Positions 2,566 to 61,754 of a DNA stretch of 64,000 nt are shown piece by piece. The DNA is from Takakia lepidozioides (lineage: Eukaryota > Plantae > Bryophyta). Every line of letters starts with the position of its first letter. The stretch's first letter is position 1. Location: positions 35,030,001 to 35,094,000 of the forward strand of contig CM060734.1 of assembly GCA_030704615.1 (NCBI GenBank), written 5' to 3'. The notes under the pieces are model-generated. The model was not told where the DNA came from. It worked only from the letters and a program-made list of their open reading frames with translations, and searched no databases. The translations under genes were made by a program, and so were the position numbers.

Positions 2566-5536
2566 CTATGTAAGCTCATCCTCCTGAGTCTCCTTAGCTT
2601 TTAATGCATTCTTGGCACGCAGCAGCAGCGTTGTCTTCCATTGATCCTGACATTCACAATCACCAAGACAGGTACAGGTGTGAGCAATTCCATCCAAGTA
2701 TTACGTATATATGTGCTGGATTGAGGTGTGAGCTTTCTCAGTATGGCGTTCAACCAACTGTTGCAGACTCATGGTCGTAAGAGGTGAGACCAGCTGGATC
2801 ACCACTAGATGATTTTCAAAGATAAATGTGTTTGGGTAGTTGTACAGCTCTTCAAGGAGATGAATGAGAAAATCCATGCAAGACTCTTCATTTCTGGCTG
2901 CCTAAGCCATTCGTCCATAGTCACATCCATATTAGCAGGGAGGAACACCTGGCACAAAGTACATCTCTTTTTCACTGCAAAGTATCAAAGACAGGTACTG
3001 CAAACCATGTATCTAAGAAACAACTATTTGTTGCATCATAATCATCAGCAAGGTGCCTCAGAAGTGCCTGTACACTGACATTGAAGGTTGCCACGAACAT
3101 CCTTCCTGTCAGTCATCACCACAGGAAAGAGAGAAACATACAAGACGAGACATGCTGTCAAACTCCTTCACAACATCCGTATACTTGACAACGTCCACTT
3201 CATCAATAGCAGCAGCCAACTCCTGAAGCAACACAGGCACCCAGCACAGTCAGCATTTGACAGTAGGTCCGACCTAACTGTGAAGGACGCATATCCAACA
3301 CTAACACAAATAGTACCCACAGCTCTGGTCAAATACTGCCTATTGTACTGCAAATATTGCAAAGCACTCATGCTATATAAACGGCAACATAACTTGTTCC
3401 AACAACTTTCATCTACTGCAATAACCTTGGGGCCCAAGATCACACGCCGGATTTGAATGTTATACGACAGGAGTCAGTGAGGAAGACAGGAGGAACAACA
3501 CAGGGCTTGCTCAGTAGCCTTCTAGTTTGCTCTTGAACATGGCACCGATTTGCTGCCCTAATAACATTACCCAATACAACAATGAAGGCAGTGGAGCGGT
3601 ACCAGCAAAAACTTGCATTCCCGCGTGTTTGAAAATGAAGGATCCATCTCCTGCAGCATCAAATGCACAACATTGTGTCACAGACAAACTAGCACCCACC
3701 ACTTTGCCAGAATTGTGTACAACCACTACCAACTGCTTACTAGGGTCAATAAGACATTAGGTCCATCTCCTGCAGCATCAAATGCACAAGCATTGTGTTA
3801 CATACAAACTAAAACCACTTTGCGAGAATCCTGCACGACCATTCACCAATTGCCCACTAAGGTCAAAGAAGAAACAGCAAAGGGCAAGGGCTGTTACCTG
3901 GTACTTGTCAATTGCATTATGAATAGCCACTTCATCATGCGCGCAGATGTGGCAAAGGCCAGCATTTAAGAGGTAACCCTTTACACTATACTTCAACAAA
4001 TTGCTGTCCAAAGATTGCCGCCCCACCATTTCGTAGATCTCAATTGCTCTATCATACCTGTCAAAACCACCAATTATTGGGACCTCATAACCTCCTTCAA
4101 GATCTAGTCTAAGGTCTAATCTGCCTATGAGCAACAGACAAGAGTTTGTTGGACAGGCAGGATGACATGAAAATTGCAACGTTAGTGAACAGAGAGTCTA
4201 CATGAACTCCTCCAGTACTGAGGATGAGGCCAACTTTCGAGCCCGTGTCAGCTCCATGACTGGAAGAATATGCCCTTTAACAATGATATAGAGTCTAATT
4301 TGCACAGGAACTATGAGATTTGGGCGTTTAAAGGAGGCCATTGCTTGTTTTCACTTGATCAAACACATTAAGAAGCAATAGGGAGATGATGAAACGCACT
4401 GTTCAAGCTGAGCAGAGAACTGGGCAACCTTAAGCTTGCACTGATTGGCTGTACTTTCCGTACCCTCCCCTGAGTAGAGCTCCCCTGCCTTGTCATAATA
4501 CACCATGGCCCTCTCTGGAGACTCCTCCTTTTCATAAAGGTCCCCAATCTCCTGCAAACAGGCTCGCCTGCCTTCATCTCAGAATGCACAAAAGCTGGCC
4601 TTCTCACTGTTTGATGACCATGTGACTACAGATTGACAATGTACCAACACAGAGAGGAAGAGAACATCATGCCTAACTATTGACACAATTCTGATCATTC
4701 GGCAAAAACCCATACCTTATAATGCTTGGCAGCTGTGGATAGTCGCCCAATTTCCTCAAACATCTGGACTGCTGTCAGTAACATTCTCACAGCCTCTGCA
4801 TTGTACAGTAATATCTCGATGAATAAACCAGAGCCTAGAAAGAGACCGAAAGATGTACCACTATTGACAAATCATTGATCTTCACTTTCTAGGCCTTCAT
4901 CCAGACACACTGTTCGAATCACAATCTTCTCAGCTGGATCAACTAAAGATGCTCAAACCTTCATCATAGGAGAAGGACATTTGTAACCTCAACATTGGCA
5001 ATCAAGCATCGCCGTGCACTAACCGTGAGGTTGGGATTTCTTGTAGCAGTTGGCAGCATCCACATATGCTGCAGCTGCTTCATGCTTGCTCTCCAGCTGG
5101 CTCCACCAACAATCCATAAACAATCGTATTTAGACTTAGTTCTGGACCTAGAAAAAAATACTGCTACAATAAATGTCCTGTGAATATATGTCCACTCCGG
5201 AGGCACCCTGCTTCACCAACAAGACAGCCATACCTTCAACTGGCAGTTAGCAAGCTTGATGAATACAGCTGCTGCCTTGTCCCCTGCCACACCAAACCCA
5301 CAAAAGATCTTATACTCCAGCTTATTTAGTTCACCTAATTAGCAATCAAAAGACTGAGAGCTGCAGATGAGAGGGGGAAACAGATAACCGCTGAAAGAGG
5401 AGGTAGCCGTGAGTTGAGGGGACGCTGGCAGGAATAGCCGCTTGCTAAGCCAGACTATTCTTTATGTTCCTTTTAAGATGTTTACTGAAACTAAAACAGT
5501 ATCAACAGGCTGTGCATACTGCAGCCTTGTGCCCGC

Positions 5537-6395: not shown

Positions 6396-9300
6396 TGGAC
6401 GAGTGTGATCTGACAGTACTTTCGACGGATTCCGGGGCTCCTCCGGCGGGCCCCCTGTCAAATCCTCCCCACCCCCTATTACCTCGGTTTCATTGTTAAA
6501 TTCTAGCGACGACCAAAGGTCGAAAGCTAGTTTAGTGTGGAACAGATATAGGGTGCCATAGTGCCTCGTCATCGCCGCCACGTTTTGTCATCGCCATGTC
6601 ATCGTAGCCACGTCATCGTCATCAATTTTTTTGGGGACCTGCCCGAACTGCCCGCCCGGAAAACCCGAAAGGAACTCGTCGCCGGAGCCTGCCCGTACTG
6701 CCCGGTTCTTGATCTTCTTGGACTTCTTGTGGTCTGACAGATACAGAGAACGCAGTTCCGCAGTGGTTGCTTCCACCTTGCAGGGATGTTAGCGCGCTTT
6801 GGCAGCAGGAAGAACGTAGCCAAGCTCGTGGTAACTTAGGTCCTTGTGACATCGTGCAACATGTTAATGGGCCAGGCTGTGGGGCAGAAATGGGTACCCA
6901 TTTTAGCAATGTGGGGTCCTGTGATGGCCAGGAAAGTTTCCCAGCCTCCGGGCAATCAGAAGAAAGGTATTAATGGTATTCTCTGTTTGTTCTTTTCTTT
7001 TCGGTCTCTGAAATGTGCTACAAAGCAATCTAGGCTCCATTCTCACCTCAAATCTGGATCCCAACAGAAGCTGATGGAGCCGACCCCAGTCAATGGTGGG
7101 ACAATGGAGACAAAAAGGTGAATGCCCGTTGGACTACAGAGAGAAGCAGATGCAATTCAGAATTGGAACTCTGTAATAAGTAGGGTTGGGGTGTTTGTTG
7201 ACAACCGCAATCGCAAGGTGCGGTTTTTTCTTGATGTACGATGTGAAGAAGTTTGTCCATCCTGCAAATGTGGGCTCTTGGCTGCTGTTAATACCATGAT
7301 TTGGTACTCTTCATGATGTTTACAAGGTTCTTGGGAGAGTCGGCTTGGTCTTAGCAGGCCGTGTTTCAATCTCTGCCTGCTCAGCTGCACCGTGGTGGTT
7401 CAGCCTGTTTTACCCTCTCATTAGACTCGGCCCTGAGATGCATATTGAATTTTGTAAGTTAGCTTTTTGGGTGGATATGTGGTGGTTTGGAGTGATTTTG
7501 ACATGTTGTTGACTAAAAAAGAGGGGAACAAAAGTTTGAGGGATTGGATGCTGCTTCTCCAAGTGATACCAATGCTTTGCAGCTTACCAAAATCTGGAAA
7601 GGGCACCTGTGAGGCAACAGTCTTGGAACCTCTTGGCACATGAAGATATGAGGGTGTAATAGCTCTGGCTCCTTTTTATTGCAACACCGATGAGATTCTG
7701 CATGCTCCTTGATATTCTCTCCAGCATTTGCATTTAGATTTATCTTCAGATGTATCTGGTTGGGATGCACTATTTCTGTTATTGACTTGCATGCCCTCGC
7801 TGGCGATCTTGCAGTCCCATCGAGTGGAGGTTGAGATGGTTGAACAATCTCCCACAAAAGTCAAAGCTGGTGAGCCCTCTATGTCATTTATTTTAGTACA
7901 AGCAGCAACTATTGATGTCATCATGCAATATGAATCCAGCATTTCTGCCAGCTAATAATGAGCCTCAAATACACATCATGATGAGCTAAATAGCTATCTG
8001 CAGTTTGTACAAGCTGACCACAACTTGGTCAAGCTATGTTCTAGCCACTGATGTATGTAAGACTACAACTGATTTTTTTCAGTTCGTTTGCATTATGCAT
8101 TCTTCTGAAATCCTCATTTGATTCAGTAGTTTCCAAAGTCTGTCTTTAATCTTCATGTTAATGCTTTCTGGCAGAGGCAGGCAGCAAAAGTATCACAGGC
8201 GGCAAGAGACAATACACAAGAAAGAATGTTACCATGGTAAGAGATGCATCATTGTCAAGATGAAAATGTATTTCTTCATTTTGCTGGTTGTGTTTGGGTT
8301 GGATGGATTTTTTTAGCCTTGTGGTTACTCTATTCGTTGGTGTTCAATCAAGCTGCCTGGCCCCTAAAATCTTCTTAGGACATTCTACGGCAGCACAATG
8401 TATTGGTTTGTATGCCAACAAGTTTTCTTCTCTTATATGGGGATCCTTCAGAGGTGTCAATCAGTTAGTTGTCATGCCAGAGAGTACAACAACTGGTGAG
8501 TGTGATAGCGAGTTTGACAGTACTCATGGCATCTCCACCTAGTCCTGCAATGAGTATTAATGACCGTTGACGGACACAAGCTTTAGTGGAATTTTTGTGT
8601 ATCGAATAACACCTATTGTATGGGAGATGTCAGCTCTGATGGAAACCTTCATTTGAGCTCTCAGAGGTCGAAGTTGTGAAGGACGTTACCTATATCAAAA
8701 AAATTGAGTTGAAATATCCACAACCGAGAGACTGAGGAGATTTCAGATTCTAGCAAGGAAGTTGTTCATACACTCAAAAGCGGGGTCAGATGTGAAGTGA
8801 TTCCTATCTATGCATTGTCTGTATGCCTTAATTCTTTTTTGTTCTTGTCTTGAGAGAATCCAAGACTGCCACATGCAGTTGCTACAATCTGATGTGATTA
8901 TTCGGAAAATGTGTTGGTTACCTGCCGTCAATTTGGCCCCTTGTTGACAGAAAGTTAAAAAGTTAGTGTCAGTGCTAGGGACATCCATGGTTCATTCATC
9001 TCCATCATCTGTGGGACTTGACACAAACCAAACTTGTCACAGTTTTAGAATGGGAAATGGTAAAACTGTGCGTCTGGAGTCTGCTGAAGTAACTTAGTGA
9101 TTCCTACAGAAGGCACCTACTCCAAGAAAACCACTCTCAGAAAGCACATGTAATCTAAAAATTAACCTCATTCAAGTCACATGGACCTGTGATTGGATTA
9201 AGATACCAAGCTGCTTTTTAAACCTCTAGACTCCAGGAGTTACAATGTCATTCCAATCTGCTATATATGATCGTCACTTATATATGGAAGCTAAGGCACG

Positions 9301-14700: not shown

Positions 14701-15323
14701 TTCCCCTTGATCTATATATTCCGAGTATGCAATTTTGATCTCTGTCAGGATAGTACAGAATAAATTAACAGATTCTCCTGGCTATCTCTGATATAATGTT
14801 ATTTAACCGGTTCAACTGGTTTCGGCTTAAACTTACAGGGGCAACAGTCGAGGGAAAACACTTACTCATATGTTCCAGCATTGATGTAGATGACAACACG
14901 CTGCCGATTTAGTGTAGGAACATTATCCACAGCGTCTTGTACTGTGCAGAAGTCACCAAATCCCTCCTGATCCACCACTATCATACCTGGACGCACACTC
15001 AAGTCCTCTAAATTTGGGCCATTGAGCAGAGACTCCTTATTTCTATCGATTGCATTGTGCTGCTCCTTGTAATTTGATTGGACGCGGGAGACCCACTCAT
15101 TGAATCGCTTGTGCGCCAATTGATGGGCTTTGAGGCTTTCTGGTGTAGTAGTCCTTAACTTGGAGATCTCCATTTCATTTCTTCCTGGGTCGGATCTGGC
15201 CGGGACCCCTAACTCAATGTTCCATCTGAAAGCGACAGAGTGTCCTGTTAAAAAAAGATTGAAACATAGCATCACTGAAACAGCCCTCAGTCTATGCATG
15301 GGGTGTTGCCGCTGGGTAAGCAT
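11772..15323 (-). CDS. PME: Pectin methylesterase (pectinesterase, no PMEI pro-domain), 5 exons
   Basis: Exons 15323-14866, 14260-14068, 13443-13237, 12620-12388, 11928-11772, all GT-AG and in phase. Motifs [65 protein letters not shown]-terminal hydrophobic signal. The ORF-track start at 15332 is GTG; the first ATG is 15323. Confidence 0.93.
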
Positions 15324-17228
15324 GTTCTTCACTGGATCTTTAGTGTGGAGGGAACCTTAAGGAGTGGTGTTGACGGTTCCTGGACCTCTGCAAAATTCTA
15401 GCTCAGACAACTCAAAAAAATTGCTCCAAAGGTGCTATTCCACTATTGCCCCGAAAGGTCGGGGCAGTGACTCTCAATCTTCTCGAGACAAATTCTTTCC
15501 CGGAAAGGGAGGTGAGCTTAGCGCAGTGAGACGTATTCTAATCTTCCTACAAAACAGAACACCTTCCAGAGACTGGCTTTCCTGCAGCCTGGTGCGAATA
15601 TTGAAATGCTAGTCTGTGAAGAGTTTCGTGATTCCCCCAGAATAGAGATCCTCTCTCTCCTCCCTGTCACTATTTCTCTCCCACCTTGTACAATTCTCAG
15701 ACTTGGTATTCAATCTAGCCCTTCTTGATGTCTATTTTCATTGCTCTACGCCCTGAAGCGCGATCTTCTCTACTAAATCACGCCACTCTACTGATTGTAG
15801 GACTGCAGACAGTACACACGCGATGACATGGGATCTAGAATCTCTCTCTCTCTTTCTTCCCTCCTCCTCCTTTCGCGAAAAATTGGGACTCGCCTCTCGT
15901 ACTGCGCAAACAGTCATTTCTCAAATGCAACAGACGCCCCGCTCAAGTTAGGCGTCAAAGGTTTGAATTTCAACGGTTCCCCGCAGCCAGTCGCCATTAC
16001 CGGTCTCACCGGTGTCTTTACCGTTACCGCGAGAGCAGGAGCAGATGACGGATGAATCCCAGGTGTTAGGCAAGCTTTCGTCGCCCAATTTGACCGGGTC
16101 CTCATCCACGCCATCGTGCGAAGCTTTCTCATCCATTATCCTGTACTGATCAATTTTACTAAGAGTCCAACAAAGGCCCAACTCACACAATGGACTGTCC
16201 AATATCGAAGTGGCTTGATTTAAAGACGAGCATATGAACGAGGACTGTATAGTGTTCACAATTTTGTGTGAATATTCCATCCTCGTGAAAAGTGAGTTTA
16301 GTATATGGAATAATTGAGGTTGAAGTTATAAGTTAGAACAGTATTGCCAATATGTACCCCAATCGCTCCAAAAAAAAAATCAAGCAAAAGGGCAAGGACA
16401 TCTAGCAAGCTGACTCAACTAGCGTGGCTATTTGCATTGGGCCCACATGGCTATTGCATGCCCCTTGTAAGTGGCTATAGCATCTGGCCCCACATGGCTA
16501 CCACATGCCCTGTGAAAATGGCAGGTGCATGTGGGGCCCACATGGCAAGGAATGCTATGGAAGGTTCTAGAATGGAGGTGATTATAGCCCGAAGTGGGAG
16601 ATCACGCAAGGACCAGAGGGTGCAGGATCGAGGGTCGAGTAGGGTGGGTGATTTCAAGGTCGCACGGTCATTGCGGGAGGAGTGGGCCCAGGTCTACGAG
16701 ATGGAAGGATGTTGGAAGACGGTGGTTTACTTGGGGCAGAAGGGTTGGTTGGTATTGTGCTGATCCGCACGACATGACTGACTTGAGGGATGTATTGTAA
16801 GTAACCAGAACCAAGTGTATTGCGTCCATTGAATAGGTTCCGGCTGCCGTTGAAGAATATATACAACCTAGTAGTAGAGAGTAGTTAAGATAAAATTGCA
16901 TGGCGCTAAGGGCCCCGCTTCTACCTGCAGACAAGTCTATCGGATCATAGACTTGAAGCACAAGGCGTGGCGTTCGAGTTACTACTGATCCACGGGTGAG
17001 GTCTGTAGTCCCCTTGCTTATTACATGCACGTGAAGACTGTTGATATAACGATGAACTGACGAGGTTTTATGCTGACTTGTATTATTATTATGTCATGCT
17101 CTCCATATTGAAGGCCAAATTTTCTGCTCGAAATTACATCTCCAACGCATTTGGCTGTATTCCATTATAACGCGATATGCCTCTACACCGAATTAATACG
17201 ACATCGAAGTGAATATACAGAGAGTGCC

Positions 17229-18324: not shown

Positions 18325-20995
18325 GACATTTGGGATTGATCCAAGTGTCAATCCAGGGGCCAATACATGTTTGGGCACTTGGCATTGTTATCTTCACGGC
18401 AGATTGCAGTGGGCTCATCTTTCTCGAGTTGAGCCTCACCGCGTCTAACTATGGCGCCATAGTGTGGATTCCCCATGGCGTGGGATGCACTTGGCTCGAC
18501 TTAATATATGAGTGATGTTTTCATGTGCAAGTGTGTGAGTTTGAGAGAGCTTGTATGCTTGTATGATTCCTTTCCTTATCACTCGAGAAAGATGAGCTCG
18601 AGTCTGTGAGCGCTAGGTTCGAGTTAGTTGTAGCACTTGTGTTTTCAGATCATGAGAAATGGTTCAGCCTAGAGTGCAGGGAGCCGTGCATGAGCCTATC
18701 CAAAGCGGATAGAGTGCAAAGACGAACAGGTTGCAGGTTTGCCATGGATAGAGAGGCGGGTAGCCTATGTTGAAGAGCGGCGTTGCATAGCTCAACGCTA
18801 TGGCAACCAAGTTTGGGCTTCTAGTGTGAAGCAAAGGAGATGTTGGCCACGAGTGGGCGAACTGGTGGTCGTCTTCTTCAGCTGCAGGCCGAGTTAAGGA
18901 GCTGCAGAAATGTGGGCTGCGCATGGGAAACTAGCGTGTTGCAGTTTGGAGATGATATGATCAGTTCTAGGTATTAATGAGGAACAGCCGAATGGTGGAG
19001 CTGTGAGGGGATGCATCGCAGCCCGTTGGGAGCTTCAGCTCCAAGTTCCTGAAGAGGTATGAGTGAAGAGAGGTCCCTCTTGTGTGCAAATCAGTGCACT
19101 TATGAAGCATGTGCTGAGTTGGAGTTTCAATCTGAAACTTAGCAGTATAAGGGCTCTTGGAGTGGCAAGAGCGGGGCTGGAAGGGCAACAATGAGGCGCC
19201 CTAGAGCCAAGGGATATGCATGAGAAGTGCAGGTGCACCAAGTTTGTAAAAGTGTGTATTTTCAGATTCGTTTTTGTGGGCTTCATGAAGAAATAGAGCT
19301 TGTTGGGCAGCATAATGCTTGCTTGTTGAGTTTAGGGTGCCTTTGGTGGGTCGTGAGAGCCCAAGAGAGCATGGCAGCAGGTCTGGTGGCTTTGCAGAAG
19401 CCATAGCTCGTCGGCGGCAGGTGCAGGAGCAAACCCCAGCTAGGGAACGCCCGGGAACGCAGGGGAACTCGTTGGGAGTTCCAGGGAACAGAGAATAGTG
19501 GCTATGACAGGCCGTTGGGGCGGTATCACGAGATACCACGAGCCTAGGTCGTGATGGTTGACCATGACTGTTGGAAGTCGTGCTGCGGACACAACGGGTG
19601 GGCACGGTGACCAGATCGTAGGGATGGCGGGCCGTGAAGGCTCGTGGGAGTGGTACCACTGGGTATCACTGGGCAGTCCGTGGCCAACGAGCGCCTAGGG
19701 TGGGCCGTGAGGAGTAGTGGCAGGTAGAGCCACGGAAGGCCGCGAACAGACAGAGTGGCCAAAAAAAAAAAAAAAAAAAAAAACGAGGATGCACGTTTCA
19801 CTCTTTTCACTCGTTTCGTGGGACCTTGATGGGGAGGCTGGGCTCTGAAGAACAACAGTTTTGAGCTAGCTGATCCTGCAGAAAAGTCGGAATTGCCTCC
19901 CTGTTGTGTTTTAACAAAGGGATTACTTCCCTGCAGGTAAGCTTTTCGGGTTTTCAGCCCAGTTTTTAATTATGGGGGAGACCAGCCTACAGGTAATTCC
20001 TTTGGACAGAATGTTGTTGGGGCCTATATGTACCTCTATTTGCTCCATTTTTGAACCTTCAGCGAATGGTGTGGTTTCTTGAGGTGGTTCCATTATGAGG
20101 AATGGCTGGTGGACGTAAAGAGGCACTGGCAGACCCTGTGGAGGCTTGCATGGGGCCTTGGAGGCCAAGTTAAGCTACACTCTATGAGAGTAGGGAGGTT
20201 ACTTCATCTTCTGCGGAGATAGTGGGAGGCGTAGTGACGGACGGATCCTCGGATGTGATGGTCAAGACTGCCACGGCGGGGCCATGACAAGCTGCAGCTG
20301 CCACGTTGATGGAGCTGCCAGCTAGGCCAGCCATTGAGCTCGCCATGGTGACACTTGGAGTTGCCATGTTAGACAACCAGGATGACATTTTCTGTTTGAG
20401 TGGACCGGCAGGCAAGAGGTACCGGCCACTTCGAATCTTGTTGGACTCGGGAGCTCAGCCATTGATGCTAGGCAGAGTTGCTATTGCAGGCTTGGGCCTC
20501 ACGGAGGCGGATATGGAGCCGTGCCCTTTCCAGATACAGACATCTCTGGGAGGATCAGAACAGGCTGGGGGCATGACACGGCGTGACTTGGCTATTAGAC
20601 TACAGCCGGATCATCCTACAGATGGCTCAGTGCTGAGAGCCAAGGTCATTGTGACAGACGCGGTCTCATACGATGTCTTTGTTGGTGGGGCAGTGTTGTA
20701 CCCCATGGGCTTCACCCTGGATTTTTGGGAGGAGTCAGCTTCCTATAGGCCTGGATGGCAGTCAGGGGAGGGCCGACGTGTGCAGCTCCCCGTGACGTTC
20801 ATAGAAGGAGTTGCGGTTGCCCAACGAGGCAAGATGCCAACACAGGTAGCATTCACAGCTGCAATGACTTGGCCTGGAGAGTTGTTGGATGGCAACACTC
20901 ATTCAGAGGATGTGTCACCTCCGGGAGAGCAGGATGATATGTATGGTATGGCGGAGTTATCTGTCATGGTTGCTTACACTCCATTGTGGGGCTCG
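18325..20995 (+). mobile_element. Ty3/Gypsy element A, 5' part (LTR-like region, degenerate gag, aspartic protease)
   Basis: Protease motif RILLDSGAQPLMLG ... YDVFVGG. Upstream frame is broken by stops. The left boundary is approximate. Confidence 0.6.
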
Positions 20996-23386
20996 AGGAC
21001 GAGGTATGGTTCGAATGAGTTCTTGGTGATGCCTTTTAGGCTCACCAACGCACCCGCGACCTTTAGCACGCTGATGAACAGTCTTTTCCAGGAGTGGTTG
21101 GATGACTTTGTGATCGTGTACATCGACGACATCTTGGTGTATTCGAAAACAAAGGAGGAGCACCTGGAGCACCTCAAAAGGGTGTTCCAGAAATTGCGAG
21201 AAATGAAGCTGTATGCCAAAGTTTCAAAGTGCGAATTCGGGGTCACAAAAGTGGAGTTCCTGGGGTATGTGATTACACAGGATGGGATCAAAATGGATGA
21301 TAGAAAGGTGAGGGCGATCTTGGACTGGGAGCCTCTGACTTCGGTCCCGGGAGTGCGATCCTTCCTTGGACTCGCCTCCTATTATCAGAAGTATGTGAGA
21401 AATTTCGCCAAGATCGCGGGGCCGTTGTCAAACCTTCTGTGTAAATCTAAAGTCTGGGCATGGAACACATTTTGTGGCCAAGCTTTTGCTGAATTGAAGC
21501 AGCGGATGGCGGAAGCTCCAATCTTGAAAATCCCGGAGTTCGATCGTCTGTTCGAGATACATACAGATGCGTCAGACTTCGCGATTGGGGGTGTACTGAT
21601 GCAAGATGGACGTCCAGTGGCTTACGAAAGTAGGAAACTGAATGAAGTGGAGCGACGGTGGCCGACGCACGAGAAAGAGATGAATGCGGTGGTGCACTGT
21701 CTTGAGCTTTGGCGCCACTATGTTGGTTCCAACCCAGTAAAGGTGTTCAGGGACAATGTCACGGTGAAGTATTTTGCCACGCAGCCCAAGTTGTCCCCAA
21801 AACAACTTAGGTGGCAAGATACTTTGGCGGTGTTCGACGTGGATATCCAGTACAAACCGGGACGAGACAACGTGGTGGCCGATGCTTTAAGTAGAAAGCA
21901 GCAGCTCTTGTTGGTGTACAAGGGCGAGACGGCGCTCCAAAGGAAGATCCGGAAGGCTTCCCGGAAGGATGAGCTGGCGAAGTCCGTGATGCAGGACTTG
22001 AGGATGGGGGTTAAATCGCAGTTCCACTTGCAAAATGGACTGCTCCGGTATAAGCAAAAGCGTCTCTACATGCCGAAGGGAGGGATCAGAGATAGCCTCT
22101 TGAGAGAATGCCATGATAGCCCGCTTGCGGGCCACGGCGGAGCCAAGCGCACTGCGGCACTCTTGAAGAAAGAGTATTTCTGGCCCAAACTGAGGGAGGA
22201 GGCAGAGGAGTATGTCAAGACATGCACCACATGCCAACAAAACCGAAGCGAGTACAAAAAGCAAGCGGGGCTGTTACAACCCTTACCGATTCCAGAGGGG
22301 ACTTGGGAAAGCGTCTCGATGGATTTCATGACTGCTATGCCGCTGTCAAAAGGATTCGATGCAATCATGGTGGTGGTGGATAGGTTCAATAAAATGGGTC
22401 ATTTCATCCCCACCAAGGAGACGGCAACGGCACAGGAAACAGGGCGACTTTACTTTGCCCACGTCTTAAAGCATCATGGAGTCCCGAAGGATATTGTCTC
22501 GGACCGCGATCCAAAGTTTACGAGTAAATTTTGGAGGGCACTTTGGAAGAAGATGGGGACGAGGCTGAAGATGAGCACCGCCTTCCGACCTACGACCGAC
22601 GGCCAAACAGAAAGAGTGAATTCCGTAGTGAAGAAGATCTTGCGGAATTACGTGTCGGCAGACCAAACAGACTGGGTGGAACACTTAGACGCGGCAGAGT
22701 TCTGTTATAATAACACAGAACACTCCGCAACGGGAGTTTCCCCTTTCGTATTGGTCTATGGAAAAACACCTCTGGTGCCGACAAGTTGGGCCGCCCAGGA
22801 CGTTGAGGAACCGGCAGTAGCGGCAGTACTGGAAGAACGCGAGCGTTTGTTGAAGCTCGCAAAGTACAACATTGCCAAAGCTAGGAAACGATATGAAAGG
22901 CAGGCGAATCAGAAGCGGAGGGAAGTGAAGTTTGAGGCAGGCACAGAGGTCTGGTTGAACATTAAGAATTTCCGACTACCTCCGGAAGTCAGTCCGAAGT
23001 TCGTACCTCCGTATGCGGGACCCTTTCGCATTCGGAAGGTTATGAATGAGGATGTGTATGAATTGGAGCTGTCGGCAAACAGCAAGGTGCACCCAGTATT
23101 CCATGTCTCCCTTTTGAAGCCTTACTTCAAAGATGAAGCGCGTCCGAATCGGCATCAAGTGTTGCATCCGCCACCTATGCTGTTGGATCATGAAAATGAA
23201 CCTGAGTACGAGGTGGAGGCAATACTTAAGTCGAGGAGGTTCAAGAACCGAGAAACGGAGTATCTCGTCAAATGGAAGGGCTATCATCAGGTGGAGGCAT
23301 CTTGGGTGCGTGCCTCAGAAATGGGAAACGCATCCGAGGCGGTTGCAGCTTTCGAAGGGCGACCTCAAAAGTGGAAGAAGCGTTAA
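20306..23386 (+). CDS. Chimeric Gypsy pol ORF: protease of element A fused in frame to N-terminally truncated RT + RNase H + integrase + chromodomain of chromovirus B
   Basis: LLDSGA protease, then an abrupt switch at ~20995 to TRYGSNEFLVMPF.LTNAPATF and YIDDIL. RNase H TDASDFAIGGVL, integrase HHCC zinc finger and DDE (SMDF, VSDRD, GQTER), GPF motif, chromodomain YEVEAILK..YLVKWKGY..SW. RT N-terminal motifs, including the first catalytic Asp, are absent. Confidence 0.9.
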   Translation: MMELPARPAIELAMVTLGVAMLDNQDDIFCLSGPAGKRYRPLRILLDSGAQPLMLGRVAIAGLGLTEADMEPCPFQIQTSLGGSEQAGGMTRRDLAIRLQPDHPTDGSVLRAKVIVTDAVSYDVFVGGAVLYPMGFTLDFWEESASYRPGWQSGEGRRVQLPVTFIEGVAVAQRGKMPTQVAFTAAMTWPGELLDGNTHSEDVSPPGEQDDMYGMAELSVMVAYTPLWGSRTRYGSNEFLVMPFRLTNAPATFSTLMNSLFQEWLDDFVIVYIDDILVYSKTKEEHLEHLKRVFQKLREMKLYAKVSKCEFGVTKVEFLGYVITQDGIKMDDRKVRAILDWEPLTSVPGVRSFLGLASYYQKYVRNFAKIAGPLSNLLCKSKVWAWNTFCGQAFAELKQRMAEAPILKIPEFDRLFEIHTDASDFAIGGVLMQDGRPVAYESRKLNEVERRWPTHEKEMNAVVHCLELWRHYVGSNPVKVFRDNVTVKYFATQPKLSPKQLRWQDTLAVFDVDIQYKPGRDNVVADALSRKQQLLLVYKGETALQRKIRKASRKDELAKSVMQDLRMGVKSQFHLQNGLLRYKQKRLYMPKGGIRDSLLRECHDSPLAGHGGAKRTAALLKKEYFWPKLREEAEEYVKTCTTCQQNRSEYKKQAGLLQPLPIPEGTWESVSMDFMTAMPLSKGFDAIMVVVDRFNKMGHFIPTKETATAQETGRLYFAHVLKHHGVPKDIVSDRDPKFTSKFWRALWKKMGTRLKMSTAFRPTTDGQTERVNSVVKKILRNYVSADQTDWVEHLDAAEFCYNNTEHSATGVSPFVLVYGKTPLVPTSWAAQDVEEPAVAAVLEERERLLKLAKYNIAKARKRYERQANQKRREVKFEAGTEVWLNIKNFRLPPEVSPKFVPPYAGPFRIRKVMNEDVYELELSANSKVHPVFHVSLLKPYFKDEARPNRHQVLHPPPMLLDHENEPEYEVEAILKSRRFKNRETEYLVKWKGYHQVEASWVRASEMGNASEAVAAFEGRPQKWKKR

Positions 23387-53800: not shown

Positions 53801-54433
53801 AGCAGGGCTGTATGTGCTGCGGGGAAAGAGAGATCTGGCCCACCACTCCAAGTTTTCATGCATTCAATCGATCATCCCAAAAATATCTGGATCTCTTTCT
53901 AGGGAAGACTGTATCGCAATTATCCAAGCAATCCCCTGCACGATAGGTATGATTCTGCCCTTCCAAGCGATTTATCCTGAAGCACTCGTGTCAGTAACAT
54001 CAGATCGCTTATGAGCAGGCCTGTGTAATCATGATCCGAGCACTTCCCTGTAGCAGAGAGGATTACTCATACCGTGTAGTACTCTGGCAGGTTTGCAGTG
54101 ACGTTGTCTTGCTCCAGAGTGAGCTTCGAGGCCTCCTGTGTAATCATCAAACGAGCAATTCCATGTGTAACAGAGAGGAATACCCATTCTTTGTAGTTAC
54201 CTTGGCAGGTTTATCGTGATCTTGTCGGGTTCCAGAACATATCAAAGCACGTTTTCTGGACTGTTTAAAAGATCTTGGTGTCCAAGAAAACCGTCTCTGG
54301 GGTAATCATGTCATGTACCTTATGGGCTAGGACACACTTGTCATCTTGTCATTGTGTCGCCAGTTTTGCAATATTCACACTGACATATAACCCTGCTGCA
54401 GATGAATCCCTTGTAGAAAACTTAGTCATCGTG

Positions 54434-54794
54434 TAGGGAATTCCAAAAAGGCCTTGATGTGAAATGCAGCGCAATTCACTTGATCAGATGCCAATTCAAT
54501 TGAATTGCGATGTCAATTCAATTGAACTAACCCTAATTTGCAATTCAATTGAATTGCTGACTGCAATTCAATTGAATTGTAATCTATAATTTTTAACGCA
54601 GTTTTGTATATAATATATATAATATATTATCATGTATATGTATATGTATATGTATCGTATACACATATACATACGAGAGTATAAGCTGAATATACATGCT
54701 GGCCCATCTATTCCTGCTGCCCGTCCATCCTTTGCTTGTGGCAAGGCCTAAGTCACGACATGAGTCGCGTAGCCTAAAGGAGAGATATATACTA
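54434..54794. repeat. Left TIR (361 bp) with palindromic CAATTCAATTGAATTG repeats
   Basis: Reverse complement of 61044-61367. The 16-bp palindrome occurs ~4 times on the left and ~2 times on the right. Confidence 0.92.
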
Positions 54795-54809
54795 CACATA
54801 TATACTAGT

Positions 54810-55057
54810 AGAGGTATCGTCATTAGGTTGTAGCCCTGTTTGATATATCTACAGAGGTATAGTATTTCATTTTACAAGAAAAGTTGGCCAAATTAATCTA
54901 TATTTATGCGGAGGTATCGTCATGAGACAGTAGCCCTGTTTAGTATACCACCAGAGGTATAGCGCCTGACTAACAAAGAAACCTGGTCAAATCAGCCTAT
55001 ATGCAGGTTGAGGTATCGTTATGAGGTAGTTGCCCTGTTTAGTATACCTACAGAGGG
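54810..55057. repeat. ~100-bp tandem repeat, about 2.5 copies
   Basis: GAGGTATCGT.AT.AG...GT.GCCCTGTTT.GTATA....CAGAGG at ~54812, ~54912 and ~55010. Confidence 0.75.
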
Positions 55058-55461
55058 ATTGGCAACGTATGCATTCTTATCTCTGTTTTTATCCCAGTCC
55101 TCGCTTGTTAGATTCTACAGCTGTTCATCGCGTAGCACTTGGCTACATGATTGTCTATTGTTTCTGGTTTACTCAATAAGAAGAGTGGGATAGAAATGTC
55201 AAGTGAGTTTTTCATGGTACGTGTCATGGTTGGGTGGACAGGAAGAGGCCAAGGAAGAGGCAGCAGCAGAACTGACACATTTGGTAAGGCAACCGTGTCC
55301 ATCCTCAGTATGAAGGATGCTGCACCCTCGGAAATACAAGATGCTTCAAGTAAGTTCAAAGAGCTTTCTTCTCTTTCTGGTGTGCTGGATATGTATGCGG
55401 AGGACAACTAATATCACCTTAGGTGCCAAGGGAGAAACAAACAACCAGACCCTATTTCATT

Positions 55462-55464
<3 letters not shown>

Positions 55465-55522
<58 letters not shown>
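55465..55522. repeat. (TC)29 microsatellite
   Basis: Direct reading. Confidence 0.95.
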
Positions 55523-55525
<3 letters not shown>

Positions 55526-57139
55526 TTTCTCCCTGTCCTCTAGGAAGCCTATTGACATTGGGTGGACTTGAAACGGGAGTACATTAATGTCTCTGTCACT
55601 AAATGCCGGCCTTCTGACCTCGTGTCCTTGTTTGTTTCGACCTTAAGCGTTTTGCTTCAGGTAAGGTAGTGCATTGGATTTAGTTGGAAAACTTGGGGCC
55701 TTTCCCTCTTTAGAATATGCCTACACAGGCCATTCCCTGCAACTCCCTGGAGTGTGATCTCTGAATGGTAACAAGCGGACTCCTACCGCTTGGGGGCAGC
55801 CCCTCCGCCCAAATTGGGCAGTCGTATGCTCTGTCTAGCATACTCGGCACTTGGGCTCGGGTTGGTTCCTGTGCTTAAACTTATGGCCTGCGAAAACAAT
55901 CAAAAATTTAGCTCCTATCAACAGGAATTGGTTACTTATGCCAAATCTAGGGCTTCATGTGTAGTTTTTGGGGTGAATCCCAGGATGGACCATGTGTCCT
56001 TTAAAACTACATGCTCTACCTTAGGCTTGGATTTCATGGTTAATGGTACCATCTCGAGACTTGATAACAGGGGTACGTTGAAGGTTGCAATGACCAAAAG
56101 TGCTTCTAATAGAGTCCCGCATCAATTCAATCTCAAATAAGTTCGTCCGTGATTTCTTGTTTGACAATTGTGAAATTATCAACAAGGGTTTGAGGTACGA
56201 GCATAGTATCTGGCTAAAACTGAATTTGAAGGGCGGCATGAGTACTCTGCTGGACCTCTTTGTCCGTTGTGTTTACATGCCACAGAGGGGACCCTGTGTG
56301 CTGACGCAGACAAGGCCTCACAAGTTTTGAAGCTGGACTGTGCTTCATTCCTTGCCAAAGGTCAGGTGGTACTATTGGGGGACTTCAATGCCTGGGTGGG
56401 CAAAGGGATCCATCAGGACGATATCATTGGACCTTTTGGTGAGGACGAGCTGAATTCTAATGGCAGACGGTTAATTAACTGTCTAGAAGAACTTCAGCTT
56501 TTGACCTTGAATAACAGGACAAGAGGTGACCAAGTGCAGTGGACTCGTGAGAAACCCCAAACTGGGGAACGTTCCATTGTGGACTATATCATAATGGACA
56601 AAATTTTGTTCCCCCAGTGTGCCGATGTGTTGATCGACAGAACTGATATTGGTACCTCTGACCACTTGCTGGTTTGGACTGACATCAAAAGGTGTTTTCC
56701 CACCACCAAGAGATCTGTGAAACGTTCGATTCGGAAGTGGCGCATAGAAAAATTCCACAATGAGGAGGTCAAGGCTGAGTACGTCCAGGCCTTGCAAGAG
56801 GCTCTCCCTCATTTTGTCCAATCGCTCCAAGAACTTCAGTCACGCTCTGTTAACGCAATAAATGAAGTCGAAAGAGCAGTGGACTCTTGGGAGAGTTTCG
56901 TTTCCTCCGTGGCTGACAAGATCATTGGGAGGAAACTAATTGTCTGCGGTAGAGCAGTTAGTTGGTGGACTAATGAGATTAAACTCAAGATAGCTGAGAG
57001 AGGAGCCCTCTATAAACAGTGCTGCAATTTGGAAACCAACAGAGAATTGTGGGCGAGGTACTACCAGCTCCGTAAAGATATCAATCAGCTTGTTAGGTCT
57101 CAGAAAAAATTATACTGGGACAAGTATACAGTGAAATAA
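55523..57139 (+). mobile_element. Truncated non-LTR retrotransposon (LINE) fragment: APE endonuclease and linker, no RT
   Basis: HSIWLKL..LFVRCVYMP (56100 frame) is frameshifted into ORF 56267-57139 with VVLLGDFNAWVG, N.NG..L, SIVDYI, TSDHLLV, WWT.EIK. Ends abruptly before RT. Left boundary approximate. Confidence 0.85.
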
Positions 57140-57313
57140 ACTCAAACCACCATGGTGGTAATGACAAGAAATTCTGCTTGGCCCTTCAACGTTTGTAGTC
57201 ACGCTCTGTAGAGGTATTGAGCACAAGGGGAAGCAATATAACTTGGCATAGGGGCTGATATGGACTTGACATTGATCTTCCATATGCACACCTCTCTCCA
57301 TGTGCTGCTCATC

Positions 57314-57518
57314 CACCACTCTACCCACTGCCTGCGTATCGCTGGTTTGACTAAGTGACTGGTCACTAGATCACCAGTCACACCTTCATAGGAGTGGGCA
57401 TGTGGCTTGCAAGTGTTGGGCTGCCAATAACAAACCCACTACAACGTTGCACTACAACCATAATCTCATCACTATTGCAGAACTCAGCATACATGCTCTC
57501 GATTCCCACTCCAGCCTT
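57314..57518 (-). pseudogene. Captured flavodiiron protein (FLV/FDP) gene fragment
   Basis: 57518-57384 translates KAGVGIESMYAEFCNSDEIMVVVQRCSGFVIGSPTLASHMPTPMK, ending at a GT, and matches the flavodoxin-domain GF.IGSPTL.GHMPTP motif. 57349-57314 QTSDTQAVGRVV resembles the start of the FLV flavin-reductase domain. Confidence 0.8.
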
Positions 57519-58204
57519 TCAAATTCCTCAACTTCCATTCAGCATCCCATGAACCCCACATGCAGCCCGAGTGTTATTACAAGCACGTTATGTGCTTTGG
57601 TAAATACTGTTGTTGGAATGAGGCAAAGCCCTCAAACCTTGGCCAAATGTTTATGCAAACCTCTTTAAACTGCTTGTGAGCTAAATGGGTTTGATGTGCA
57701 TGCCAGGGCTAGCTCCATCTCATTTTTTGGGGGACCCTTTGGGAGACAGATGGCTTACTCAGAAGTGCTTCAGCTTCCTCTGATTCACTGGCAAAAGAAA
57801 TATGGCTAGCTCTGAAAGAAACAGACAATTTCAAACCTCACAATTGATGAATGGCTTCCCCTGCATCATCATGTACTCCCCTGGCACTAGTATCTGGCCC
57901 CCATGACACAACCCCAGAGAAAACAAAAGACATGTTCATTTCGAGAATTATCTCCAATAATCTTGTTTCGATACCCTTACAAAGGTATCATGTTGCAATT
58001 GGGATGTGTGTTCGATAGAGAGTTTAATATATCAACTCTTAGACGTTGATACTCTTACAGTGGTATCATGTTTGGTATATGTACATAGCCATATTTTGGC
58101 ACTATAAGGGCTTGGCAGTATGAAATTGGTTAGTGTCTCAAGGTGCAGATGAAACATGCTAACATATTTAGATTGTAAGCAACACCCACCAGTCAAACTC
58201 ATCC

Positions 58205-58344
58205 TCAGAAGAGATTGATACACAAAAATTTCTCAGGGTCGTTGGTGCGCAGGCTTTTGTCAAGGGCTTGATATCATCATCGGTCAACTCAAAGTCAAAG
58301 ACATCAAGGTTCTACTTCAATCTCTCCATCTTGTCTGACTTAGG
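58205..58344 (-). pseudogene. Captured aldo-keto reductase C-terminal fragment (sorbitol-6-P dehydrogenase / mannose-6-P reductase-like)
   Basis: PKSDKMERLK*NLDVFDFELTDDDIK / ALDKSLRTNDPEKFLCINLF*, matching the AKR PKS...RLKEN..VFDFEL motif. One stop (58312-58314) and one frameshift. Confidence 0.8.
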
Positions 58345-58688
58345 ATTTTTATTACTGTATGCAAAATTCTTAGATTATGAATAAAGGGTTCTTGAAAATG
58401 AGGCAAGTTGGTCATCATTGTCTCATATGTGGGGCAGACAAAGATTGTTGGAGATAAAAGGCGGCCTCATGAGCCTCACGCTGTGCACTTCCCAATGAAA
58501 CCCAACAATTTCACAACCCTCCAGAGATCGTACAACCCAGGCCCTGCCCCCAAATAGTATGGTTTGATGTTTAGGGTGTATGGTTCAATATGGACAATGG
58601 ATATGATGATGACATTTATTTAACAGAAATCCTCAAAGTACGTGACATAAAATAATTATCTTTGAATGTGATTGTCCCACTTATTCAG

Positions 58689-60381
58689 TTAATCACAATT
58701 ACATACAAGAGCTTGTGTAATTAAAAGTTGGAGAGCTTCCCTACTTAACACAGTATTACCAATGAGGTCCAATTGATCAAAATATCTATGTTCATGCGTT
58801 GCCAAACCACAATACCGAGACATGTAGTAGTGGAGATGAAAACAAGAGATCGAATCCTTCCCAACCTTTCCAATTTCATAAGCTTGTGCACGGACACGAA
58901 CCATGTCAGGAATGAGTTCAGCTCCTTTGGTAGGAAGGTCATGCAAACCACCTGCACATCGCCACCTTTGATTCCCACGAGGCCCCAAGTCTTGGTTACC
59001 AATGTGTCGGGGGTCTTCCCTGAATCGTGGGTCATCAATAAGGTGGCTGGTCCATCTACATGATCAAACACATCACCACATTAGAATAACATTCCAATGT
59101 AAATTGTAGCTTAACAATGAAAGTACAAACAAGAGAAAACCATGAGCTTACCCATGCAAAAGTTCATACTCACGAAAGAAATGAGCAGGAACATGTGATC
59201 GACGATATCGACCGTTTTCATTAATCGTGCGAACTCGATGTCCATTCCAAATCTTCACGTATTCATCAACAGCTTCTTGTAGTATGGGCATATATATGTC
59301 AATAAAAGATTCTCGTTGTCACGGATCGTCCATATCCAATAATCCATCATTGACCATTGTTTGGAAGCAATTTTTGTAGTAGAACATTACCTTCTCCCAT
59401 AGATGCCGCCAAAAGTGTTCAATCCTCTAGCGTGGTGATTACACCACACAAAGTATTAGGAATATGCACAACATTACACACTCAATGATTAATAAAGATG
59501 AACCAAGAAATATGACAGAAACGTAAAGTTGATATGCAAGATAGAATTGTATAGAACACTAACCTGATTGTGTGTAGAAGACCCAGTCAAGTACGGATTG
59601 GGTGTTTCAGAACGTGTGGCTTCAATGTGTTGTTTTATAAGAGAGTGCTCTACTGCAAAATCAGATCGAATTCGTAAAGGTGCTCCAAACTTGGAAACTG
59701 CATCGTGATATCCTTTGAAAATGGTTTTTTCTTTCTTGTTTCTTGCAACGTTCGCCCATAAAACAAAATGAGAGGCCCCATCAATGCCAGCATGTACTCG
59801 AAGACCAAACATAACCAATTTGTCATAAGCTGCACCTCGAATTGCACACATGTTTTAGTTTGCCTACAATTTTGTGCGATATGTAATGCAAGAAAACGTC
59901 TTGCATGTGCATCTTCAAATAACCTTAAGATGCATGAGATAAAATACTTACAGTCAATGTGCCATAGAGCCATAGGCATTGTCACATTATACTGAGTCCT
60001 CCGAATTGCCTGTGCCCTTCTCCTACGCTCATAATGGTAGGGTGAGATGATTTTCAAAGCTTCCCCCACCTTCCTTCGAGAAATCCGCCAATTTGACCTC
60101 CTTAAGGCAGATTGCACTGTTCTCATTCCCCAATTTGTCCCATTCTCTTCAATAGGAAGTAACTCTTGAATCTTTTCACACAAGCGTTGGACACTCAATT
60201 GATGATGAACTTTGAAAGGAGACCCTTGGACTTCTGATAACAATCTTCTCAATGGTCGTACATCATCAAAAGAAAGGGCAGTGGCGATTGATTTCATTGT
60301 GGCACCCTCATTCAACATTGCTTCCACATAAAGTACTAAATCATCCACTACTTTGTCACCATCCAAATGGTTGTTTTCCAT
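58689..60381 (-). pseudogene. Spliced IS3/IS481-family (IS3EU-type) DDE transposase, 4 exons, one premature stop
   Basis: Exons 60381-59952, 59829-59564, 59426-59152, 59055-58689 join in phase at GT-AG sites. They give an HTH-like N-terminus, WG.RTVQSALR..RISRRKV, LWHIDSYDKL..GLRVHAGIDGASH, PLRIRSD, GSSTHNQRIEHFWR, WNGHRVR. In-frame TGA at 59321-59319. Exon 4 and the start codon are less certain. Confidence 0.88.
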
Positions 60382-61043
60382 GCTCACATGATCTGTCTTA
60401 TCTCTGCTTAATAGCCCCAGTGCCAATGCCTTCGACCTTGCCCTTGTTGTAATTGTTTGCTGTTAATTCTGTAGTCACTGCATCCACTCACACACTCCCC
60501 ATAGGACTTACGTCACTAAAGTTCACATAGGCTATCAAGTAGATGAACCAAATGTACTTTGAAACAACAACTACTCTATCCTAAAATGTATTAGCAAACC
60601 ACAGTACACAGTGTGGGCAGGTTGAAGACAAACCATGTGATCAAGCTCTTTCTTTCAGTGTGTGTGTTGAGGAGCGTTTGGTAACCCACTCTACTACCCC
60701 TAAAGTTCTCTCCTCAAAACTCATGAGTTACCTGCACGTACACAAGAACTACAGCTTTAGCTAAAATGATATCTTTATCAATGATTGGGGGAACTCATGC
60801 CAATATGGGAATGTGCTTACTCATGGGCAGATCTTGTCATTTGGTGATCCAAGAAAGCTTCCATCATACATAGCGCCACCACCGCTCCACCACCGCTCAA
60901 CCCTAAACTTGTTGTTGCATTCTTCTCTACGTTACTTCTCGTCCTCCAACTGATTTGATCCTTTCACTTTTAGGGCACCTCTGCCCTAAAAACCCTTCAT
61001 CACTTCATTTCTCTCTCCCTTTCCCTCGCTCTCGCTCTCTCTC

Positions 61044-61367
61044 TAGTATATATCTCTCCTTTAGGCTACGCGACTCATGTTGTGACTTAGGCCTTACCAC
61101 AAGCAAAGGATGGACGGGCAGTAGGAATAGACGGGCCAGCATGTATATTCAGCTTATACTCTCGTATGTATATGTGTATATGATACATATATATATACAT
61201 ATACATGATAATATATTATATATATTATATACAAAACTGCATTAAAAATTATAGATTACAATTATTAGGGTTAGTTCAATTGAATTGGCATCGCAATTCA
61301 ATTGAATTGGCATCTGATCAAGTGAATTGCGTTGCATTTCACATCAAGGCCTTTTTGGAATTCCCTA
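61044..61367. repeat. Right TIR (324 bp)
   Basis: Ends ...GGCCTTTTTGGAATTCCCTA, followed by TSD ATCGTG. Confidence 0.92.
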
Positions 61368-61754
61368 ATCGTGAGTCACAGGGGAACTATTTTGTTCCAT
61401 TGCCCTCTGTAGTGCTGGGATCCATCCATGCAGCCTCATTAACTTAGATCAACCTATGTCGTCTTGGGATCAACCCCCATGCTGTGTTAAATCATATGAT
61501 GGCCAGGTCATGTATTTATCTTAGTTCAGATAAGTCAGGCCTTTGTAAAAAAGTTTTTTTTCAAAAAAAGTTACACACTTAAGGGTTACACCACTTAAGC
61601 AAATAGGTCATTAGTTCAGATAAGTCAGGCCTTATACCTTCTCCCATTCATCTTAAATGGGAGCTGTAAGGTCCAGGGATCAAATCCCTTAGTGCTTAGT
61701 ATTTGTCATCTTAACCAGGAATTTTTTTTTTTTTTGTAATAAAAAATCTTGTTA

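Follow-up and report, generated by a model that had tools for sequence, protein, structure and literature searches.

Complete families of the IS3EU superfamily of eukaryotic DNA transposons always have TA..TA ends and usually make 6-bp target-site duplications (PMC10045372, Kojima 2023). In fungi, IS3EU ends conform to TAYGG..CCRTA (PMC12730594, Kojima 2025). The GingerRoot elements of Selaginella lepidophylla also make 6-bp duplications and have, for the most part, TA..TA ends; GingerRoot and IS3EU form one lineage with 99% bootstrap support and have been merged (PMC10045372). The 77 intact GingerRoots described measure 3.9–12.9 kb and have 100–150-bp repeats; fragments of host genes are carried by 28.6% of GingerRoot elements, and reads matching the DDE region were found in 18 Bryopsida and three Lycopodiopsida species (PMC6839031, Cerbin et al. 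2019). Here, we describe a 6.9-kb element occupying positions 54434-61367 of a 64-kb stretch of contig CM060734.1 (the whole stretch that was analysed, referred to below as the window). We are confident that it represents a single inserted copy of a GingerRoot/IS3EU DNA transposon in a land-plant genome, most likely that of a moss.

The element resembles GingerRoot in its 6-bp duplication, in its TA..TA ends, in the considerable length of its inverted repeats and in its size, which is within the published range. Both carry host gene fragments and encode an integrase-related DDE transposase that lacks an HHCC finger, and GingerRoot has been reported from mosses. With IS3EU, the element shares TA..TA termini, a target-site duplication of 6 bp and a transposase akin to those of prokaryotic IS3 and IS481, and its TAGGG..CCCTA termini are close to the fungal ones. 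TET/JBP and alpha-kinase genes may be carried by fungal IS3EU elements, whereas neither is found in this copy. The DDE transposases of prokaryotic IS481 and IS3 likewise have a helix-turn-helix upstream, the similarity to them being one of profiles at the family level, and duplications of 6 bp are made by most members of IS481 (PMC10045372). The prokaryotic elements differ, however, in having TG..CA ends, no introns and much shorter repeats.

An earlier note on this DNA had assigned the element to the IS3EU type, in the IS3/IS481-related class, and had named 6-bp duplications and TA..TA termini as hallmarks of that type. The assignment is borne out by the rva_4 match described below, by profile similarity to IS481 and IS3 and by the hallmarks given in the literature (PMC10045372). 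The note had also proposed that the family is little described or undescribed in plants, and had said beforehand that a family already catalogued from plants would speak against this. GingerRoot is catalogued from S. lepidophylla and was detected in 18 moss species (PMC6839031), and so the claim of novelty fails. The element is an ordinary additional copy of a family known from clubmosses and mosses since 2019 (PMC6839031).

Element ends and terminal inverted repeats

The limits of the element are exact (Table 1). The target-site duplication, ATCGTG, is perfect (6/6) and lies immediately outside each arm, just as it had been read in the earlier note. Both arms begin identically with TAGGGAATTCC. 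An inverted-repeat search returned two adjoining pairs of blocks (54434-54537 with 61264-61367, and 54575-54794 with 61044-61263) with 97-98% complementarity. In a global alignment, the arms were ~97% identical over the aligned bases, with nine mismatches and one 37-nt indel. Arm lengths of ~320-360 bp, as previously claimed, are correct, but with ~97% identity and unequal length the arms are not near-identical, as they had been described. All nine inter-arm mismatches are transitions, in line with what deamination of methylated cytosines would produce.

Exactly two copies of the 20-nt terminal sequence, inverted relative to each other, are present in the window; the number expected from shuffled sequences is 0.00. 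A 16-nt palindromic motif is present in four copies in the left arm (54492-54579) and in two copies in the right arm (61272-61309), with no further copy elsewhere in the window. The 37-nt indel between the arms corresponds to two copies of this motif, which is a candidate transposase-binding site. When JGI (Joint Genome Institute) metagenomes were searched with the repeat-end pattern, one contig was found (L004:1652-1681), having the terminal 30 nt alone in common with the element; we take this match to be due to chance or to a relic end.

The transposase gene and its affiliation

The transposase gene lies on the minus strand and consists of four exons and three GT-AG introns, with its coding pieces spread over three reading frames. 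Together, the exons measure 1338 nt, a multiple of three that corresponds to 445 codons and a stop. The three introns had been proposed in the earlier note; their splice sites and frames fit, and the predicted junctions are joined in relatives. The exon 2/exon 3 junction is gapless in P0003 (residues 83|84; 180-kb contig) and in other relatives. The exon 1/exon 2 junction is contiguous in P0303, on locus L006, a 1.7-kb contig where the equivalents of all four exons are contiguous. At the exon 3/exon 4 junction, P0281, P0296, and P0277 read ..ERLHG|WTSHI.., and in the window ..ELLHG meets WTSHL..; in P0305, intron 3 is kept in frame. Exon 1 can be aligned to the N-terminal open reading frame (ORF) of L001 and to P0303. 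Splicing of the window gene at the three predicted junctions is suggested by this homology, each junction being joined at the exact site in relatives.

Table 1. Window coordinates of the element's features and the basis for each.
Feature	Position	Strand	Basis
Left target-site duplication copy, ATCGTG	54428..54433	.	Direct reading; identical to 61368-61373
Left terminal inverted repeat, 361 nt, begins TAGGGAATTCC	54434..54794	+	Inverted-repeat search, arm alignment
Right terminal inverted repeat, 324 nt, lacking 37 nt of the left arm	61044..61367	-	Inverted-repeat search, arm alignment
Right target-site duplication copy, ATCGTG	61368..61373	.	Direct reading
Exon 1: ATG to WHID plus first base of split Ser codon; first catalytic Asp; helix-turn-helix-like N-terminus	59952..60381	-	Model from frames and splice sites; weak matches to HTH_21 and IS481
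Predicted intron 1, 122 nt, GTAAGT..GCAG, phase 1	59830..59951	-	Splice-site/frame model; joined in P0303/L006
Exon 2: YDKL..GIDG..RIRSD..HNQ; second catalytic Asp	59564..59829	-	Pfam rva_4, E 2e-14
Predicted intron 2, 137 nt, GTTAGT..CTAG, phase 0	59427..59563	-	Splice-site/frame model; joined in P0003 and others
Exon 3: RIEHFWR..WNGHRVR..ELLHG; catalytic Glu	59152..59426	-	Pfam rva_4; 58-66% identity to moss-clade proteins
In-frame TGA within exon 3	59319..59321	-	Tyr or Phe here in relatives
Predicted intron 3, 96 nt, GTAAGC..TGTAG, phase 2	59056..59151	-	Splice-site/frame model; joined in P0281, P0296, P0277
Exon 4: C-terminal region; TAA stop at 58689-58691	58689..59055	-	L001 downstream ORF, E 1.8e-17; P0281, P0296, P0305
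Aldo-keto reductase C-terminal fragment, possible capture, weak	58171..58311	-	PDB 3wg6, E 0.48; Atlas aldo/keto reductase clusters, feature score 0.90
Flavodiiron protein gene fragment (flavodoxin-like domain), captured	57381..57518	-	PDB 6h0d/6h0c residues 282-326, E 8e-8
Non-LTR retrotransposon (LTR, long terminal repeat) ORF fragment: apurinic-type endonuclease domain	56207..57136	+	Pfam Exo_endo_phos_2, E 3e-6

The exons were each searched separately. Exon 2 matched Pfam family PF24764 (rva_4, "integrase core domain") at the E value given in Table 1, compared to E 0.04 for rve, and two parts of exon 3 matched adjoining positions of the rva_4 profile. HMMER, run exhaustively with exon 2 as the query, returned 674 proteins. 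Among the named ones are proteins of a jellyfish, of amphioxus, of a hemichordate and of basidiomycete fungi, as well as of the green algae Coccomyxa and Trebouxia, and the closest named ones are proteins of the moss Ceratodon purpureus; rva_4 is common to the window transposase and to the cnidarian, amphioxus, hemichordate, and fungal proteins. Relatives in public assemblies are mostly fragments, and in moss assemblies they are multi-copy and mostly degraded.

The four window pieces were aligned with 28 longer relatives and P0003 (33 rows), and fell seamlessly on the conserved blocks of the family. Pfam rva_4 was matched in 32/33 rows and rve in 22/33, while the NCBIfam profiles IS481 and IS3 were matched in 27/33 (best 3e-18) and 26/33 (best 4e-14), respectively. 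The motifs WHID-S-YDKL, HAGIDG, RIRSD, HNQ|RIE, and WNGH are all present, and the catalytic triad is intact, as had been claimed: it is made up of the WHID Asp, the RIRSD Asp, and the RIE Glu, which are contributed by exons 1, 2, and 3, respectively. The second Asp and the Glu are 35 residues apart, which makes this a DD35E transposase. Exon 1 of the window copy gave weak NCBIfam matches to IS481 (E 0.003) and IS3 (E 0.026); its similarity to a helix-turn-helix is limited to general likeness and the weak Pfam match to HTH_21, and no Pfam match to an H2C2 zinc finger, a chromodomain or SH3 was found in it. Exon 1 had no match in a search of a 5.8-billion-protein set, and exon 4 matched no Pfam family.

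The structure of P0029 of Coccomyxa, the closest full-length relative, was modelled with a predicted local distance difference test score (pLDDT) above 90 in the core, and the model matches the integrases of retroviral intasomes as well as the transposases of Mu, TnsB, and IstA. P0003 alone had no match in the PDB, and the family profile gave marginal integrase matches only (E about 0.06). A tblastn search of 72,556 plasmids with the closest full-length relative revealed no similarity at E values up to 1.

Two separate trees were built, one on 147 rows of the exon 2 region and the other on 57 rows of the exon 3 region. The alignments are short and the searches quick, and the groupings to be relied on are the starred ones. 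The window transposase falls in a clade with C. purpureus proteins, with support of 87 and 98 in the two trees (Shimodaira–Hasegawa-like approximate likelihood ratio test, SH-aLRT). The moss clade is nested in a larger one with Coccomyxa (and, in the exon 2 tree, Trebouxia), with support of 95 and 97. Gypsy integrases are set apart from the family as a whole with support of 100, in keeping with the earlier expectation that the protein would not group with LTR retrotransposon integrases.

These data bear on the idea that the element belongs to another integrase-related superfamily, i.e., that it is a Ginger1 or Ginger2 (TDD) element, a Polinton remnant, an IS481EU element or that it encodes an LTR retrotransposon integrase, which we consider highly improbable. 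Polintons too have inverted repeats and 6-bp duplications, exon 2 has a weak rve match, and the fold modelled for the family is similar to that of retroviral integrase. The rva_4 match is, however, better than the rve match by more than 10 orders of magnitude. Ginger1 and Ginger2 have integrases with HHCC and GPY/F-type modules. Duplications are 4 bp long in Ginger1 and 4-5 bp in Ginger2, and those of IS481EU, an element of parabasalids with TGT..ACA ends, are ~4, 15 or 25 bp (PMC10045372), whereas here a 6-bp duplication is combined with TA..TA ends. The H2C2, chromodomain, and SH3 profiles, to which exon 1 has no match, are all matched by a gypsy ORF elsewhere in the window. Polintons/Mavericks measure 15-20 kb compared to 6.9 kb here, and no ORF or Pfam match for a protein-primed DNA polymerase B, a packaging ATPase, a protease or a capsid protein was found in 54795-58690. 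A Ty3/gypsy element would have direct LTRs and an rve integrase with an H2C2 finger beside gag, reverse transcriptase and RNase H; here, the repeats are inverted, rve is matched at E 0.04 only, the trees separate the two groups, and no reverse transcriptase or gag of the element's own was found.

Several points weigh against the assignment to GingerRoot/IS3EU or set the element apart from the published GingerRoots. The repeats are 324-361 nt long, compared to 100-150 nt in S. lepidophylla. The four-exon structure is predicted for this genome from homology, while the exon-intron structure of the transposase is undescribed in PMC6839031; the element is likened to GingerRoot by description, and its host is not Selaginella. 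Clustering with the Repbase IS3EU and S. lepidophylla GingerRoot type proteins is indirect, the moss, green-algal, animal, and fungal rva_4 proteins with which the transposase clusters serving as a proxy for named references. The length of the duplication rests on the one copy examined here plus the literature.

The only in-frame defect of the gene is the TGA in exon 3, the single nonsense change that the earlier note had placed at 59321-59319. Because of this stop, the copy is unable to make its own transposase. A copy that is still autonomous and currently active, with the TGA being an assembly or sequencing error or being read through, would be consistent with the absence of any frameshift across the 445 codons, with the retention of all near-invariant family residues, and with the perfect target-site duplication. 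We nevertheless regard this as unlikely to a marked degree, since the nine transitions and the 37-nt indel between the arms point to decay, and since the relatives known from public assemblies are for the most part fragmentary. The inference of fairly recent activity made earlier is also weak: the arms differ by ~3%, the gene is already broken, and repeat arms do not date an insertion.

Based on these features, the following cut-and-paste mechanism can be proposed for a functional member of the family. The DD35E transposase would bind the terminal inverted repeats with its N-terminal helix-turn-helix, probably at the repeated 16-nt palindromic motif. It would then cut at the TA ends and join them to the target with a 6-bp stagger, the repair of which would generate the 6-bp duplication. 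Since the ends of the disabled copy are intact, its mobilisation in trans by the transposase of another copy is conceivable in principle.

Intron positions and history of the family

The annotated Coccomyxa gene has introns (L009:6674-6822 and 7081-7212) at the position and in the phase of window introns 1 and 2. After WHID, its intron 1 interrupts the codon for Ser, while its intron 2 separates NT from KIE, which are aligned to NQ|RIE. The shared positions are WHID-S|Y (phase 1) and, for the second intron, NQ|RIE (phase 0). In the Trebouxia model (L011:6687-6926), an exon begins at the equivalent YEKL, and there is intervening sequence at VNQ..RIE. A different picture is seen in the animal and fungal homologues. 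The amphioxus homologue (L010) is a single exon, and the fungal homologue (L013) has introns at other positions. A model from the hemichordate Ptychodera flava (L012:1760-3293) has one 1.5-kb gap between WHI and DG, four bases off intron 1, and no gap at the position of intron 2; the 1.5-kb "intron" may be a nested insertion rather than an intron.

The equivalents of exons 2 and 3 are contiguous, without intron 2, in a moss-like contig (L001:8001-8528) and in the V-chromosome copy of C. purpureus, KC19_VG294400 (L008:9983-10525). Thus, intron 2 was lost in this sub-branch.

The element may belong to an intron-bearing green branch of IS3EU/GingerRoot common to mosses and trebouxiophyte algae (Coccomyxa, Trebouxia), a reading that we hold tentatively and to which we give slightly less than an even chance. 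As judged from the compared sequences, the shared introns are in line with a green branch that is old and bears introns. A possible alternative history is one of transfer between terrestrial algae and mosses. GingerRoot was not found in charophytes (PMC6839031). The earlier suggestion that the introns were gained after a horizontal acquisition is disfavoured, because two intron positions are common to the window gene and its green-algal homologues.

Spliceosomal introns, two of them at positions conserved with algal homologues, would also be expected of a domesticated, transposase-derived host gene that lies between inverted repeats by chance. Such an origin is barely credible, as the gene has a premature stop and, alongside captured fragments, forms part of a unit that has repeats with TA ends and is flanked by a 6-bp duplication, while its relatives in moss assemblies are multi-copy and mostly degraded.

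Cargo, neighbouring sequences and implications

The 3.9 kb between the transposase gene and the left repeat contains several foreign pieces (Table 1). No Pfam match was found in the putative aldo-keto reductase piece or in the other putative cargo pieces, and two further minus-strand pieces had no PDB match. No reverse transcriptase was found downstream of the endonuclease ORF. This piece, which comes from the 5' part of a LINE (long interspersed nuclear element), is the reverse of a usual, 5'-truncated LINE insertion, which suggests either capture or later deletion.

In related loci, a HECT-domain gene lies at most a few kilobases away from the rva_4 transposase; this is the case in two moss-like contigs (L002:2369-8479 and L003:10001-16119) and in Coccomyxa subellipsoidea (L009:1-8780). 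The transposases of these loci belong to the same clade as that of the window copy, but the 6.9-kb copy has no detectable HECT gene remnant. Within the flanks examined, the related loci L001-L003 and L008-L011 were not found to be bounded by inverted repeats. The window copy is a short derivative without the HECT-type gene of its relatives and with captured foreign DNA.

Several other features were observed in the window. A tandem repeat with a period of ~118 bp (54020-54236; 1.9 copies, 76% matches) lies ~200 bp beyond the left end of the element. The gypsy ORF mentioned above (20306-23386, plus strand) is an open, 1026-aa chromovirus-type Ty3/gypsy ORF with reverse transcriptase, RNase H, H2C2, rve, SH3, and chromodomain matches; its best public matches are 55-60% identical and come from land plants only. 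Two host exons were recognised on the minus strand, one alpha-SNAP-like (3778-4179; Pfam SNAP, E 6e-19) and the other encoding the start of a pectinesterase domain (14862-15332).

The analysis reveals no new kind of system, and the notion of a family undescribed in plants is hereby corrected. It adds one well-delimited copy, with its ends, exon-intron structure, and cargo, to a superfamily that is rare in plants. Should the intron-bearing green branch be real, either the family would have been resident in green plants since before land plants, or there would have been a transfer between algae and mosses at the DNA level; neither has been reported in the literature searched. The shared introns provide a concrete handle on the question of vertical inheritance versus transfer of this family in the green lineage.

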